Assembly: GCF_035594765.1 (NCBI RefSeq)
Contig: NW_026943819.1
Location: 1,178,001 to 1,242,000 of the forward strand
DNA: 64,000 nt
Source of the DNA: Anolis carolinensis
Taxonomy: Eukaryota
Direction of reading: 5' to 3'
Shown here: piece by piece, positions 1,336-16,200 of the stretch
Layout of the letters: every line of letters begins with the position of its first letter
Numbering within the stretch: position 1 is the stretch's first letter
Program-made: the position numbers and the translations under genes
Notes under the pieces: model-generated
Told to the model about the DNA's origin: nothing
The model's input: only the letters and a program-made list of their open reading frames with translations
Databases searched by the model: none

Positions 1336-6343
<5,008 letters not shown>

Positions 6344-7555: not shown

Positions 7556-8046
7556 TTGAATTTGGCGCGGTGCTTCTCCATTGGCTGCAGGTGCCAGGGG
7601 AGTGCCGGCAGAGCCAATGGGAGCTCGGGGGTGGGGTCTGCGCCATCCAATAGGGAGCCAGAGCGCTGTCTGCTATTGAAAGCAGCTGGAGTGGCGGTCA
7701 CGAATTTGAGGAACGCCGGCAGGGCCATTAGGAGAGTGGGGCGTGGCCTGCGCTGTCCAATGGGAAGGCAGCGCGGGCTGATACAATTTGGTGCTCTGCT
7801 TCCTCATTGAGGAGGGAGGGAGTACCGGCAGGGCCAATGGGAGTGGGGTGCCCAGTCCGCACCGTCCAATGGAGAGCCACAGCGTGGCGTGCTATTAAAT
7901 GCAGCCGCGTGGGCTTTGGCGTTGACGAATTTGGCGCGCTGCTCACCCATTGGAAGCAGCCGAGTGGGGAACGCTGGCAGGGCCAATGGGAGCGCGGGGC
8001 GGAATCTACGGTGCCCAATGGGGAAGCGGCGCGGGCTGGTATAAAA
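7556..8046 (+). promoter_or_regulatory. Histone promoter made of four tandem E2F/CCAAT/CCAAT/TATA-like modules
   Basis: Proximal module: TTTGGCGCG near 7930, ATTGG 7949, CCAAT 7983 and 8015, TATAAAA 8040-8046. Homologous modules begin near 7559, 7703 and 7785. Confidence 0.85.
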
Positions 8047-8085
8047 GCGGTTTGCGCGGGCTTTGGCTCTCACTTGTCTGAGGCG

Positions 8086-8499
8086 ATGGCGAGCGTGCGC
8101 GGGAGGTCGAGAGGCAAGTCGGGCTCGTCCCGGGCGGGGCTGCAGTTCCCGGTGGGGCGCGTGGGGCGGCTGCTGCGGCGCGGGCGGTACGCGGAGCGCG
8201 TGGGTCGCGGGGCGGCGGTGTACCTGGCGGCGGTGCTGGAGTACCTGGCGGCGGAGCTGCTGGAGCTGGCCGGGGAGGCGGCGCGCGCCCACCGCAAGGC
8301 CCGCATCGCCCCGCGGCACCTGGCCCTGGCCGCCCGCAACGACGAGGAGCTCTCCCGCCTCCTCCGCACCGTCACCTTCGCCCAGGGCGGCGTCCTGCCC
8401 CACCTCCACGCCGCCCTCCTCCCGCGCGGGAAGGAGAACAAGGAGGAGAAGAAGGCCAAGGCCCCGCTCAAGGCCAGCCAGGCCTCGCAGGAGTACTAG
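8086..8499 (+). CDS. H2AX: Intronless histone H2A variant with SQEY C-terminus; divergent H2AX orthologue (137 aa)
   Basis: H2A fold ([36 protein letters not shown]), terminal [12 protein letters not shown] box 46 nt upstream, and syntenic position between DPAGT1 and HMBS. ATTAAA at 8763 is followed by a U/GU-rich tract. Confidence 0.9.
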
Positions 8500-9126
8500 G
8501 CCCGGCCCGGCACACCCGCCAAAGGACTCGGAGGCGTCTCTTCTTCCCTTCTGACCATCTGGAGTCGAGTCGTGGAGTGCGAGGCCCCAACACTTCCGGC
8601 TTGAAGGGACTGGACTTACTTTTGGGACTGGAGGCGCCGCTTGCAACTTCCGCTCCTTCATTCAAGGCTTTGTGGAAGACCAGGCCCCCAACACTTCCGG
8701 GAAACTTGCTGTGGACACTTCCAAGGGACTGCACTGTCTTTGGGGACTTCACTCTCTCACTCATTAAAGGTTTCTTTTTAGTTTTTTGAACATCTCGTGT
8801 TTTGTCTTGAGTGGGGGGGGTCGCTTCCGGTTCCGTTGACCACATTCTCATCGTACTTCCGGTTGCAGATTGTACGGGGAGAGTCTTTCCTTGGGAAGAA
8901 GGACCTCCTTCCCAAACGCTGGTCTAACCGCTTTTGTGGGCTTTTTGGAATTCCTGGCCACTGGGAGTTCAAAATTTCCCTTCCAAGTCTAGAATGTAAA
9001 TTTATATGCCACTTTATCTCCATGCCACTTAAATTAAAATTTACAAGTTTGTACAATCACATATATACAGGTATATTATACACTATATTACAATATTTTT
9101 ATAAATTATATATTGTATTGCTATTA

Positions 9127-9449: not shown

Positions 9450-10269
9450 TATATTGTATTAAATTATAATATCAATATTGTATGTATATGTTACACCATT
9501 AGCATAGAACACTTATTATTTCATGTCTGAAACAACTTGAGAAACAGCAAGTTGCTTCTGGTGTGAGAGAATTGGCCATCTGCAAGGACGTTCCCTGGAT
9601 GTTTTGACGTTTTATCATCTTTGTGGGAGAACTCTTGTGCCCCCGCAATGGGGAGCTGGAACTGATCTGTACTCATTGGATTCGAAACAAAGACCTCCAG
9701 GTTTGGCCCCTTGCACCACCAGGGGGAAAGGAACCTGAGGCTGTTAAGAATTGTGGGAGTTGAAGTCCAAAACACCTGGAGGACTGAAGTTTGCCCATGC
9801 CTGCTTTAGGATAATCTTACGGAGGTAAATTTGATAAAAATAGGGTTGATTAATAAAATAAATCCTTAAAATCTGCAATTCTCAAGAGCTCCCTTCCATA
9901 TGTCTGCTCCTCAGCTCCAAGGAGCATACAAGAGTTTGCTTTGGCTCCATTTGGGCATCCAATACAAACCTCAACCACCGCTCTCTATCGTAAATCTCTT
10001 TAATCGTTTATATATATTATGCAGCTGCATACATTAAGACACTTGATTCTATGCAATAAACCCCCCTTCGTTGCCTGCATTTAAAAAACTTCAAATGGAG
10101 GCCTGCGAAAGGATCTTCCGACGGCACCAACTAGTTAAATGCTGGACTACAACACCCAGCATTCCTCCTCAGCCTTGACCCTGGCGGGCGCTGCAGTCCC
10201 ACCCCAGGGGTGTCGTGATGCCTTGGGATCCAGAGGCAATGGAGATGCATTGCCAAGTCCTGAAGGGCC

Positions 10270-13200
10270 TCAGGCGGCGTTGAGTTGTCGGGCGGCATCC
10301 AGGATGGGCCGGGCCCCTTGGCTCAGCAGCAGTGCGGCCAGATCCAGGCCCAGCTTCTCGGCCGCCGCTTGTGCCGCGCGAGGCTCCGTCCGGGCCATGA
10401 TGCCCAAGTGCTGGATGTTGTCGTCGGGACCCTCCTCGTCCTGACCACGATACAAGACCGCCGTTGGCACATATATTATGAGGCACAGATGACAACACAT
10501 GCACGCAAGATTAAAACCCATACTAAAATCCTTACTAATAAAATGTCGACTTAACATTGATAGTGATTTGGATGGCATTGGCCAAGTCACGCTCTCTCAG
10601 CCTCAAGGGGAAGCCAACCCCAACCAACCTTTACCATGGTTTTCTTTTCTGAAGTTCGTTCCCAGGAGGTTTACCAACTGCCTTTCTCTGAGGCTGAGTG
10701 TTAGTTGGCCAAGCTGTTTCCTTTTTTGGGCGAGTAGAACTCACCTCCATTGGGAATTTCACGTTTGTCTGCATGGTCTCGCACAAGCTCTCCGATCCGT
10801 CGAGGCTGTAGACGGCTCCGGTCAAATATAACTGGGGAAAGCCAAGCAGAGGGAGGCTGATGCAGGGAAAGGCAAGGGTCACACACTGGGGGTCCCAGAG
10901 AGTGGCTAAAGCCTGGCAAAAGGCCTCACCACCTACTGCAGCCACTGACCAGGCTGCCCCATTATTATTATTATTTTATTATGACAGCAAACAAGATAGA
11001 TATGCTGGATTTCATATCACAAATCACAAGTCAAACACTTCCCAAGTGTCTAGGACTGTGTGATGTATTTTCGGATGATGCGTGCAGATCCCAGCAGGGT
11101 GGCCTTTTGCAGTTGGCAGATCGTTATTATTATTATTATTATTACTACTACTATGTTGTTGTTGTTGGAAGGCTTTCATGGCTGGGATCACAGGGTTGTT
11201 GTATGTCTTTCGGGCTGTGTGGCCATGTTCCAGAAGTATTCTCTCCTGCTCGGGGGTCGCATTATTATTATATTTATTCTACATTACTATTTACCACTAG
11301 CTGCAACTACTGAACAGACTGCCCTATTATTAATACATATTATTATTATTGTTATAGATTATTATAAATTATTAGCATTATTTATTATCATCTTTGTTTC
11401 TAGCCTTACCTGGGAGTCCTTCAGCGTGGTGCTCACTGCCACAGGGACACTGCAGCCGCCCTCCTGCAAAGGAAAGTGAAGGGAGATCACTCAATGCTCC
11501 TTCCTTCCTCCCTTCTTTCCTTCCAGCCCTGGACTCACCAAGTGCTTCATGAAGGCCCGCTCCGCAATGCAGCGCAGCACGGTTTCCCCGTCATGCAGGA
11601 CGGACACCATCTCTAGGATCTCCTGGTCCCTGGCTCTCACTTCCACGGCTAATGCGCCCTGGAGAGAGAAAGGGGAAAAAGATTTGACATAAACATTAGG
11701 AATAATAATAGTAATGTGTTGTCAAAGGCTTTCATGGCTGGAATCACTGGGATGCTGTGAATTTTCCGGGCTGTATGGCTATTTTCCATAAGTATTTCCT
11801 CCTGACACTTCGCCCACAACCTCTGAGGATGACTGCCATAGATGTGGACAAAGCATCAGGAGAAAATGCTTCTGGAACATGGCCATACAGCCCGGAAAAC
11901 TCACAGCAACCCAATAATAATACTTTATTTTTAACCTGCCCTCTCTCCCTGAAGGGACTCAGGGCAGCTTCCAAAAACAATGATGGCAAACATCCAATGC
12001 CATATGCAATGACAGCAATAATGCCAGTGCCCCCCATTTCGTAATGACTTTTGAACCATTTTTTAAAATGGATTGCGCATCGCTACCACACAAACCTGTC
12101 CAACAGCATAGAGGCACTCCATGGGAGTCAGAATCTGGAAGGAAGGAAGCGAAGGGAGGTCAGTCTGGACGGGGAACGAGAGCCCAGTTGCAGACAGGCG
12201 GATGGACAAATCCCTTCTCCCCGCTCACCTGGCCAATGCGGTCCTCCCAGCCCATGCGCCGCAGGCCGGCCGTGGCCAGAACGATGGCGCTGAAGTCGTC
12301 CTTCTCGTCCAGCTTCTTCAAGCGGGTGTTCAGGTTGCCCCTCTGTGCAGGCGGCCCGTTAGGGAAAATGAGCCTTTCCAGGGCAGACCATGCTCTAATC
12401 TATTTATTTCTATCCTGCTTTTCTCCCAGATCGGGACTCAAAGCAAAATGTGCAATGGCAGGATGTTCCTCCTTACAGTTTAACAAACTTTTCCCAGGTT
12501 TTTATGATAGAACCAATTAGGAAATGATATTTATAACCCAGGAACAAAAACCGTGTTACATAGTACAACAACAATAATAATAATAAGCATAGTATTAGTA
12601 ATGTCCTCTTGCCTAAGAAGGTAATTCTCCACCACCTATAATGTGCTTCAAAGCAGCGTCTTTGAGCAAAAGAAAAGATACGATGTCCTTGAACTGCAGC
12701 TGCGGGAAGGCCCTCTTCAGCTGAGCCGCCCGGCGAAGGGAGCTGGTCCCAATCACACTGCGGAAGAGACCAAAGAAAGAAGGCGGGCAGATATCAGCTT
12801 GGCTCTGTGTTTGTGGAGGAATACTCCACCTGCAAGGCTCCTCTCTTTTTTAAAAATACATTGCATTTGGGATACAAAATATAAAAAGGAGAAACATCTA
12901 GAGATAAACAAATACAGTAGAGTCTCACTTATCCAAGCTAAATGGGCCGGCAGAAGCTTGGATAAGCGAATAACTTGGATAATAAGGAGGGATTAAGGAA
13001 AAGCCTATTAAACATCAAATTAGGTTATGATTTTACAAATTAAGAACCAAAATATCATGTTATACAACAAATTTGACAGAAAAAGTAGTTCAATCCGCAG
13101 TAATGTTATGTTGTAATTACTCTATCTACGAATTTAGCACCAAAATATCACGATGTATTGAAAACATTGACTACAAAAATGGCTTGGATTATCCAGAGGC

Positions 13201-16200
13201 TTGGATAAGCGAGGTTTGGATAAGAGAGACTCTACTGTATATCTAATCCAAAAACGTTGTTTCCCCAAACAAATACATTGCAATATCCTATCCAATCTTT
13301 CCCTTCCCGTGAACGTATCCATCCATGACTTCCAACACTGCTCACTGTGAGTCCCATGTCTCATAAACTCTACCCAAAATTCAAATTCAATAGCTTGGCC
13401 ATTTGAACATATTCAAATAACTTTTCACTCCAATTCTTTTTAGATGGATCTGCTTCACCTTTCCATGCTGCTGTTATTGTCGGTCTAGCTGCAACAAAGC
13501 CATATTGATACATGTCCTCGTCTCCTTTGATAATTCTCTCTCTATAACCCTAAAAGGCTCACCTTTTATCTGGGAGGCTGCTGAGCGTTTTGCCGACGTG
13601 CTTCGGGTGAAAGACAACAGCGTCGTGCGGGTTTTCCCTCCTGCGAAGGAAGGACAACAAAGACGGGCAGTTTCAAGGGCAAAGGCCATGTTTTTCTCAG
13701 GCTACAGTCCCCAGAAATGCTGGGAGTTGCAGTTCTCACAAGGAGCAGAACCAAGTCTTATCTGGAGGGAAAAGGGAAATCGGGAGGCCCAGGAGATGGA
13801 CACGGAACAAAAGACCCTCCCCGACATATTTGGTGTAGTTGGCAGTGAAGACAGAGTCTGTCCAGGGCACTCACTTGCAGACGGCTCCGATGGTGAATCC
13901 AGGCGGGAGAGAGGTGGGCAGGTCCTTCAGGGAGTGGACCACCAAGTCAACCCTGCAATCGGAGGAGGAAGACATTGCAGATGGACAATATGGAGACGGA
14001 AGGCAGCACCACATAGAGCCCAATGGGGCCAAAGGAAGAGGAGGAGGCAGGTGCCAATCTCAAAGGTGTGGCCGGGATCGAATCCAGCTCAGTTTCCCAA
14101 TCTGCCCAGGTCAGCCGTGCAGGAAAGTAGCCCATGTCCCTCCGGGAAAAGCATGACCTACATTCATTGTGTCAGTGAATTATAATCCCCGGTGTGTATC
14201 TGTGATAGGGATTTTAATAGGGCTTGTTTTTATCTCGCTGTTTGGACTATGCTGTGAGGCTGCAAGGAGAGATGGTCAAGTCCATATTATTCCTGGAGCT
14301 GCGTGAAATCTTGGGCCGATGTCAATCCTAGTAAAGAAATTCAGTCTCCAAGATAACAGCTTCTATATCCAAAGAAATTCTTCGTATGATATGCAATGCC
14401 AAGACTGGTACAAAACAAGGTCTCCAAAAGAATTTCTTTGAAAATAGAAGCTGTTATCTTGGAGACTGAATTTCTTCACTACGATTGACATCAGCCCAAG
14501 ATTTCACACAGCTCCAGGAATAATATGGACTTGGTTGTCTCTTTATGTCTGTTATTTACTCCTTGAACATTATATCCTTTGTTGGATTATGACATGGAAA
14601 CTGTAACTTTACTTTTGATATTCTGAAAGTAATTTCTTTATATGTAATATAGTTTGAAGTAACTTACTCTCATGTAAAGTTGTAGAAACCAGGTTTGTGT
14701 TACACTCCTTGTGAGTATATACACATACATTATTGTTTTGTGTTGTTATAGATATGTGTGCATTACCCGCAAGGAGAGGTGGGTCATCTACATCTATATC
14801 TATCTATATCTATAATAAAAAGTCAGTGTTTCTTGGTATGTTTGTTTGTATGTATGTATGCAGGTGCTGGTGTATTTTTTTGGCCAGGGCTCCGACTTCC
14901 AGAGACGACGGAAATCCCCACAAATGAGGGACCTGGATGAAATTTGGCAAATGGACCAGCCTCCCCCCGGTGACCCACTTTACGTCTTGGTGCAATTTGG
15001 GGGAGGATGGACCATGGACGATGGGATTTGCAGTACCTTCACCAGCCTGTAATGGGTCCATTCATAACATCCAAAAACAAACAAGCAATGCCTTTTTCAA
15101 ATAACCTAGGAACCCAAGCTAGTAAATAAATAAATACATGATGGTGATGATGATTAAAGGGGAGGGGACTTTGGATCCCAGGTGCAGATCACTCACTCGT
15201 TCCTTTCCAAGGCGTTTTCCAGCTCTTTGGTGAAGAGGCTTTTCTCTCCGATCTGGGACGGGAAAGAGGAGACTACGGTCAGGGCTGCGTTTGCCCAAAT
15301 GAAAAGGGAGGGAGGGAGTTGCAAAGGGAACGTGGCTCACCTTGGACAGTGCGGTGTCCAGGATCTTGTCTCCCGTGGTTGTCATGCCGACTGCGGACGG
15401 GGAAGGAAAAGCAAAGCATCATTAGGTCAAGAGGCCAAGGCGGTCAAAGGCTACGAGGAAAGGGCCAAAGGGGAAAAGCAAAGGCACACTCACTGATCTC
15501 GAAGTGCAGCTGAGGATGGTGCTTCTGCAGCATCTCCACCACGCTGTCCGTCTGGATACGGGCCAGCTGCAAAAAAGGCCCAGATCAATATATATCATTT
15601 AGAGTCCTTCCCGTATCCGATGCAATCGGTAACAACATTAACTGCATATTTGGAGTCAATTGGGGTAAACTGTAGGGATATTGGATCTGGATCTTGATAA
15701 CAGCTTGTTAACACCTTGATTACTTTAACTTGGGTTGTAATGTGGGTTGTATGCTGTGTGAGTGTGTGTCAAGTGTATTGATATGGCTAATGTGGTAATA
15801 AATAAAATGAATTGTCTATTGTATTGTCTGTAATAAAATAATAACACTATTTAACATGTTCTTGGCTGCCCATACACACCATAAATAATAATAATAATAG
15901 TAATAATAATATGCAACATACTGAATATACTCGAGTATAAGCCTAGTTTTTCAGCCCTTTTTAGGGCTGAAAAAGCTCCCCTCGGCTTATACTCGAGTGA
16001 GAGTCCTGGCCGGCTTCTATTCAGGTCGGCTTATACTTGAGTATATAGGTATTCAGAGTTGGACAGTCTTATCTTATTAAAGTCTTATTATTATCTTAAA
16101 TTACAGTTTTATATAAATATTCAAAAACATTTAACCTACTGATGCCTCAAATCATGCAATTTTATTAATATCTATTTTTATTTTTGAATTTGACCTGTAG

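Follow-up and report, generated by a model that had tools for sequence, protein, structure and literature searches.

About a sixth of the core of H2AX, which is among the most conserved vertebrate proteins, has been rebuilt in anoles, a lizard genus with established genetics, and has then been conserved. The gene lies in a stretch of 64,000 nucleotides from Anolis carolinensis, referred to here as the window (Table 1), which contains one run of N of 131 bases at 24745-24875. It is the syntenic orthologue of H2AX, and its fold, its motif, and its locus all identify it as H2A.X. The H2A histone fold is evident from a match to H2AX in the PDB (E = 1.8e-47), and the Pfam domains Histone and Histone_H2A_C were both found on the orthologue from Anolis sagrei, which is also the nearest protein (85% identity; alignment A1). 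The stop codon directly follows SQEY, so that the protein ends in the SQ[E/D]-hydrophobic motif. A preliminary description of this DNA had placed the gene at the H2AX locus between DPAGT1 and HMBS, and had reported an intact 137-aa open reading frame, a TATA box, and an SQEY end; all of these were recovered. The order DPAGT1-H2A-HMBS was conserved in all squamate loci examined, namely those of A. sagrei, Sceloporus, Phrynosoma, Pogona, Phrynocephalus, Varanus, Elgaria, Thamnophis, Podarcis, and Gekko. At the bird locus, only the HMBS side of the H2AX synteny was seen, and HMBS stands on the same side. A literature search found no paper on anole or squamate H2AX divergence, and the gene is apparently an undescribed lineage variant of H2AX.

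Table 1. Features of the H2AX locus in the A. carolinensis window (positions are those of the window).
Feature	Position	Strand	Remarks
DPAGT1, 9 exons, 406 aa	1336..6343	+	Synteny marker and rate control
Promoter module (E2F-like site, CCAAT boxes, TATA or TATA-like box), four tandem copies	7556..8046	+	
Proximal TATA box	8040..8046	+	Conserved with A. sagrei, Sceloporus, and Pogona
H2AX coding sequence, single exon, 137 aa, GC3 0.985	8086..8499	+	
K15 and R17G	8116..8124	+	K15 is Arg in A. sagrei (K13 instead); R17G in both anoles only
N68E, D72A, N73H, end of helix 2	8275..8292	+	
K118R (squamate-wide) and K119G	8425..8430	+	K119 lost in both anoles only; K120 next in this species
C-terminal SQEY (S139 equivalent)	8485..8496	+	No variation across all squamate H2AX tabulated
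Poly(A) signal ATTAAA	8763..8768	+	
HMBS exons, partly mapped	10267..18557	-	Synteny marker and rate control

A 220-aa database product (P0003) was rejected as a true N-terminal extension of the gene: its ATG lies inside the CCAAT box of an upstream promoter copy, and stop codons block the extension in A. sagrei. P0003 is probably a gene-calling artefact, and the 186-aa product of Sceloporus was rejected as the same artefact. Databases label squamate H2AX as "H2A-beta, sperm" or "late H2A.2.2". Protein searches and the member lists of squamate clusters yielded no second squamate-type SQEY protein from Anolis, although they could miss a copy of bird or mammal type if it sits in a very large cluster; to judge from these searches, anoles probably have no H2AX other than this locus. 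The usual lysines are present in an anole H2A (P0053). Both anoles carry duplicated H2A genes outside the window (P0053, P0082), whose products are about 170 aa long and have an extended C-tail rich in Ala, Gly, and Pro, and P0303 from the gecko Heteronotia resembles them.

Within the core residues S18-P117, the preliminary description had estimated about 24 substitutions, and the count is exactly 24 of 100 against rat H2AX (P0131). Its residue calls (Arg at 9, 13, 36, 74, 95, and 118; G17; A48; G119; K15) proved correct, and the acidic patch is complete, with E56, E61, E64, D90, E91, and E92 all kept. Compared with Pogona H2AX, 20 of the 100 core residues differ. An older layer of change is found in all squamate H2AX and comprises K74R, K95R, K118R, V114A, Q112P, I79V, and L83V, while K36R is common to squamate H2AX and birds. 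Core differences number only 0-2 of 100 among agamids, a lacertid, a snake, and two anguimorphs, compared to 6-9 core changes in geckos and phrynosomatids (8-9 of their own in Sceloporus and Phrynosoma) and 19-22 in anoles. Seventeen core changes are common to both anoles sampled (n = 2, the window species and A. sagrei): H31G, P48A, T59A, I62L, N68E, D72A, N73H, T76A, V79A, Q84A, V87A, G98R, R99T, I102F, N110H, I111L, and P112H. V83L is alike in anoles and phrynosomatids, and the two anoles alone have R17G, the loss of K119, and an N-tail about 5 residues shorter. N68 and D72 are invariant in 132 distinct non-squamate H2A cores (animals, fungi, and plants) and 33 squamate H2AX rows, and A48, L62, A79, A84, A87, and F102 occur in none of these. 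The view that the divergence is lineage-specific stands for the 17 core changes, R17G, and the loss of K119, all anole-only, but not for the Lys-to-Arg changes of the fold, which are squamate-wide. Geckos (Gekko, L009) gained N73H, T76A, and N110H independently by AT-to-GC changes, as in anoles, and the skink Lerista (P0036) has N73H and T76A, likewise AT-to-GC changes also found in anoles.

A loss of most lysines is not an anole trait, as the total of 8 equals that of Pogona, Varanus, and Thamnophis; the C-tail has 6 lysines here and 9 in A. sagrei, compared to usually 3 elsewhere. The N-terminal SGRGK had been called missing. The N-tail is indeed shorter, but it still starts with S-V-R-G-R, making loss of the motif itself dependent on alignment. 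Given this start and a start-codon context in A. sagrei similar to that of Sceloporus, an internal deletion with substitutions explains the N-tail as well as a loss of SGRGK does. Retention of K15 holds in the window species but not as a conserved site: A. sagrei has Arg there, and the lysine is missing from Elgaria, Lerista, and five geckos, and thus K15 is not specially kept on squamate H2AX. Lerista H2AX lacks both K13 and K15. The argument that a kept K15 preserves the RNF168/53BP1 axis on H2AX is not supported, since K15 is variable in squamates and R17 is lost in both anoles; together with R11, R17 orders the tail so that 53BP1 can bind ubiquitin on K15 (PMC9464978). Nor is the second SQ a novelty, as H2AX of rat and many squamates likewise ends in SQASQEY. 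While the tails turn over, SQEY and the core acidic patch are kept without exception in the squamate H2AX tabulated, and the preliminary description had rightly noted both in the window gene. The acidic patch is the docking site used by RNF168, and the SQEY flag is read by MDC1 (PMC11854596, PMC6465349). No gamma-H2AX antibody stained spermatocytes of the bearded dragon, two geckos, and a turtle (PMC9597255), which may reflect tail epitope differences. Commercial H2AX antibodies may miss anole H2AX.

The promoter module is present in four copies here, six in A. sagrei (L001 9090-9950), and one in the other squamates examined. The A. sagrei copies, 120-161 bases long and 67-97% alike, suggest repeated unequal crossing-over. 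Only the proximal copy in the window has a perfect TATA box. Downstream of the stop codon, no match to the histone stem-loop was found in 10 of 10 squamates (window 8500-8800, loci L001-L012), whereas the bird has one, and squamate H2AX appears to be poly(A)-only. Mammalian H2AX mRNA has both stem-loop and poly(A) forms (PMC9526256); absence of the dual 3' end is a squamate-wide loss with no bearing on orthology. Repeat units in the 3' UTR measure about 100-110 bases and contain an ETS-like core, with 4 cores here (8585-8748), 7 in A. sagrei (L001 10446-10770), and 0-1 in other squamates.

An assembly or sequencing artefact can practically be dismissed as the source of these differences: A. 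sagrei, from an independent assembly, has 17-18 of the same changes, and sampled words of 7950-8850 were present at 84-100% in 20 sequencing runs, putatively of RNA, from 9 studies, so the differences are not assembly errors. It is also very unlikely that the gene is a decaying or dispensable copy, with another H2AX elsewhere doing its job, even though the anole stem is compatible with such a reading. We used a self-written, stationary MG94-type codon model (F3x4, branch classes) on the 100 core codons. On the anole stem, dN was 0.116 and omega exceeded 0.2 (p = 0.0055), with a point estimate of 1 or more that did not differ significantly from 1 (p = 0.39-0.72). In contrast, omega was 0.035 in the background and 0.04 on both the phrynosomatid branches and the two anole terminal branches, the last differing from 1 (p = 2.5e-11) and from 0.15 (p = 0.01). 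Core codons of A. carolinensis and A. sagrei differ by 3 non-synonymous and 17 synonymous changes, compared to a ratio of 18:12 on the stem (p = 0.003). Third positions of H2AX are 90-99% GC in every squamate, and this saturation makes its own dS a poor clock. With the neighbours as a yardstick (DPAGT1 and HMBS stem dS, 0.36 and 0.52; tip dS, 0.13 and 0.17), omega was about 0.3 on the stem and about 0.13 at the tips, and a yardstick of DPAGT1 introns (16-27% different) gave a tip omega of about 0.08. Purifying selection has thus held the core since the two anoles split, at an omega of 0.04-0.13, and not at the dN/dS of about 1 that had been suggested as a sign of decay. Furthermore, the reading frame and SQEY are intact in both anoles, the promoter is kept, and the protein searches and cluster lists returned no other squamate-type SQEY protein from Anolis that might have taken over.

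What caused the burst on the anole stem is less certain. The excess is firmly particular to H2AX, with 17 amino acid changes in 100 residues compared to 3 in 193 for DPAGT1 (p = 2e-6), although the HMBS pieces are faster than DPAGT1 (stem dN 0.085). A caution about GC-biased gene conversion, already raised in the preliminary description, was borne out: at codon positions 1 and 2, stem changes comprised 12 AT-to-GC and 2 GC-to-AT (Fisher p = 1e-4 given the available sites). The neighbours follow the same trend, with 18 AT-to-GC and 3 reverse synonymous changes in DPAGT1 and HMBS on the anole stem (window 1336-6343 and 10267-11667) and a DPAGT1 GC3 of 0.83 in anoles compared to 0.63-0.71 in other squamates. 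Because H2AX and both neighbours all show the bias on this one branch, the anole stem is likely to have gone through an episode of GC-biased gene conversion that affected the whole locus. Gene conversion is not the whole story, since DPAGT1 kept a stable protein under the same GC pressure (omega stays 0.02), and changes in H2AX that are not AT-to-GC or span two or three bases include H31G, P48A, Q84A, R99T, P112H, and I102F, at positions invariant from fungi to mammals. We lean, by a little, towards relaxed constraint combined with GC-biased gene conversion and followed by purifying selection. A loosening of constraint on the fold in pleurodont iguanians would have come first. Locus-wide gene conversion acting on a CpG-island gene could then, along the anole stem, have helped to fix about 17 changes of neutral or mildly deleterious effect, and purifying selection would have held the new sequence from then on. 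Relaxed constraint and gene conversion are sufficient for the stem burst, and positive selection is not demonstrated. PRDM9 is reported to be absent from Anolis and Sceloporus, having been lost in their ancestor, and complete in Pogona, and species lacking PRDM9 recombine at CpG islands (10.1101/2021.06.08.447603). Its loss fits the faster H2AX change in both pleurodont lines, yet only as a hypothesis, since H2AX has stayed conservative in birds, which lack PRDM9 too. Sceloporus DPAGT1 lost GC, which counts against the favoured explanation; the Sceloporus locus is on a 170-Mb chromosome. In this PRDM9-less lineage, GC-biased gene conversion may have rewritten a core chromatin protein.

Adaptive remodelling on the anole stem is possible but considerably less probable. 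The outcome would have been escape from PRC1 or a nucleosome of lower stability, and promoter amplification would have altered the dose. The raised omega on the stem compared to elsewhere and afterwards, the shift in the ratio of non-synonymous to synonymous changes, the joint change of two separate PRC1-related sites (K119 and D72) with charge moved to E68, and a promoter repeated four and six times in the two anoles only would all fit. However, stem omega does not differ from 1, and it drops to about 0.3 when the neighbours serve as yardstick, because GC had already saturated the third positions of H2AX; measured in this way, the later slowdown is not significant either (p = 0.21), and nearby lysines (K120 here, K121-125 in A. 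sagrei) might still be modified. We consider it improbable that the gene has specialised for the germline or for a particular stage, as have the short H2As of mammals and the egg H2A.X-F of Xenopus and fish, with somatic damage signalling relying little on anole H2AX. A shorter N-tail, missing tail lysines, and a changed docking domain also characterise the short H2As of testis (PMC5880237), but anole H2AX keeps SQEY, the whole acidic patch, and a C-tail of full length, and the E2F/CCAAT/TATA promoter is of the ancestral proliferative type, amplified rather than replaced.

Anole H2AX is most likely a working gene pared to a signalling flag, from which most lysine-mark duties have been stripped. 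The SQEY tail, to judge from its invariance, would still be phosphorylated by ATM/ATR/DNA-PK and read by MDC1, and the core acidic patch would still dock chromatin factors. Lysine marks (K13/K15, K119, and K5) would be left to neighbouring canonical H2A, which retains these lysines. Since RNF168 modifies K13/K15 of H2A-type histones generally and P0053 keeps the usual lysines, we infer that ubiquitin marks can sit on neighbouring H2A. H2AX itself may need no more than its SQEY tail and its core acidic patch.

PRC1 modifies H2A at K118/K119. RING1B R81, one driver of the binding of PRC1 to nucleosomes, touches H2A D72, and RNF168 takes another orientation (PMC6465349). The escape from PRC1 that the preliminary description had proposed from K119 thus gains D72A as a second feature. 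As K119 and D72 are both lost, and only in anoles, nucleosomes with anole H2AX are probably poor PRC1 substrates, although PRC1 might still reach K120 here or the lysine run from 121 in A. sagrei. Through N68E, an acidic charge is shifted by about one helical turn from D72, at the rim of the acidic patch, and positions 68 and 72 both belong to the patch mutated in PMC7515726. A bolder proposal, which we hold to be rather unlikely, is that selection rebuilt the sole anole H2AX so that breaks are signalled via SQEY while PRC1 docking and ubiquitylation are made impossible by the loss of D72 and K119. If true, damage signalling would be uncoupled from Polycomb silencing in a living vertebrate. 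P48, N68, D72, and K119 are usually treated as fixed, and anole H2AX, which lacks them, is a natural mutant that lets one ask whether H2AX K119 ubiquitylation matters for repair or for silencing near breaks.

Like vertebrate H2A.X, the anole gene occupies the DPAGT1-HMBS locus as a single exon with an E2F/CCAAT/TATA promoter, an SQEY end, and the acidic patch. It differs from it at 24 of 100 core residues (rat), in the absence of K5, K119, and R17, in N68E and D72A, and in lacking the stem-loop and having its promoter in tandem copies. With the H2AX of other squamates (Pogona, Varanus, Podarcis, snakes, and geckos), it shares K36R, K74R, K95R, K118R, V114A, a poly(A)-only 3' end, and 8 lysines; these other squamates retain SGRGK (mostly), R17, H31, P48, N68, D72, Q84, I102, and K119, and anoles do not. 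H2A.Z has Ala at the position of P48 and two His at the docking-domain positions N110 and Q112, but it is a different gene and clade. The mammalian short H2As (H2A.B, L, P, Q, and R) resemble anole H2AX in that their fold evolves fast, N-tail lysines have been lost, and the docking domain is changed. In contrast to these extra testis genes, with their truncated C-terminus and weakened acidic patch (PMC5880237), the anole gene is an H2AX orthologue in which both are intact, with a full tail and six acidic residues.
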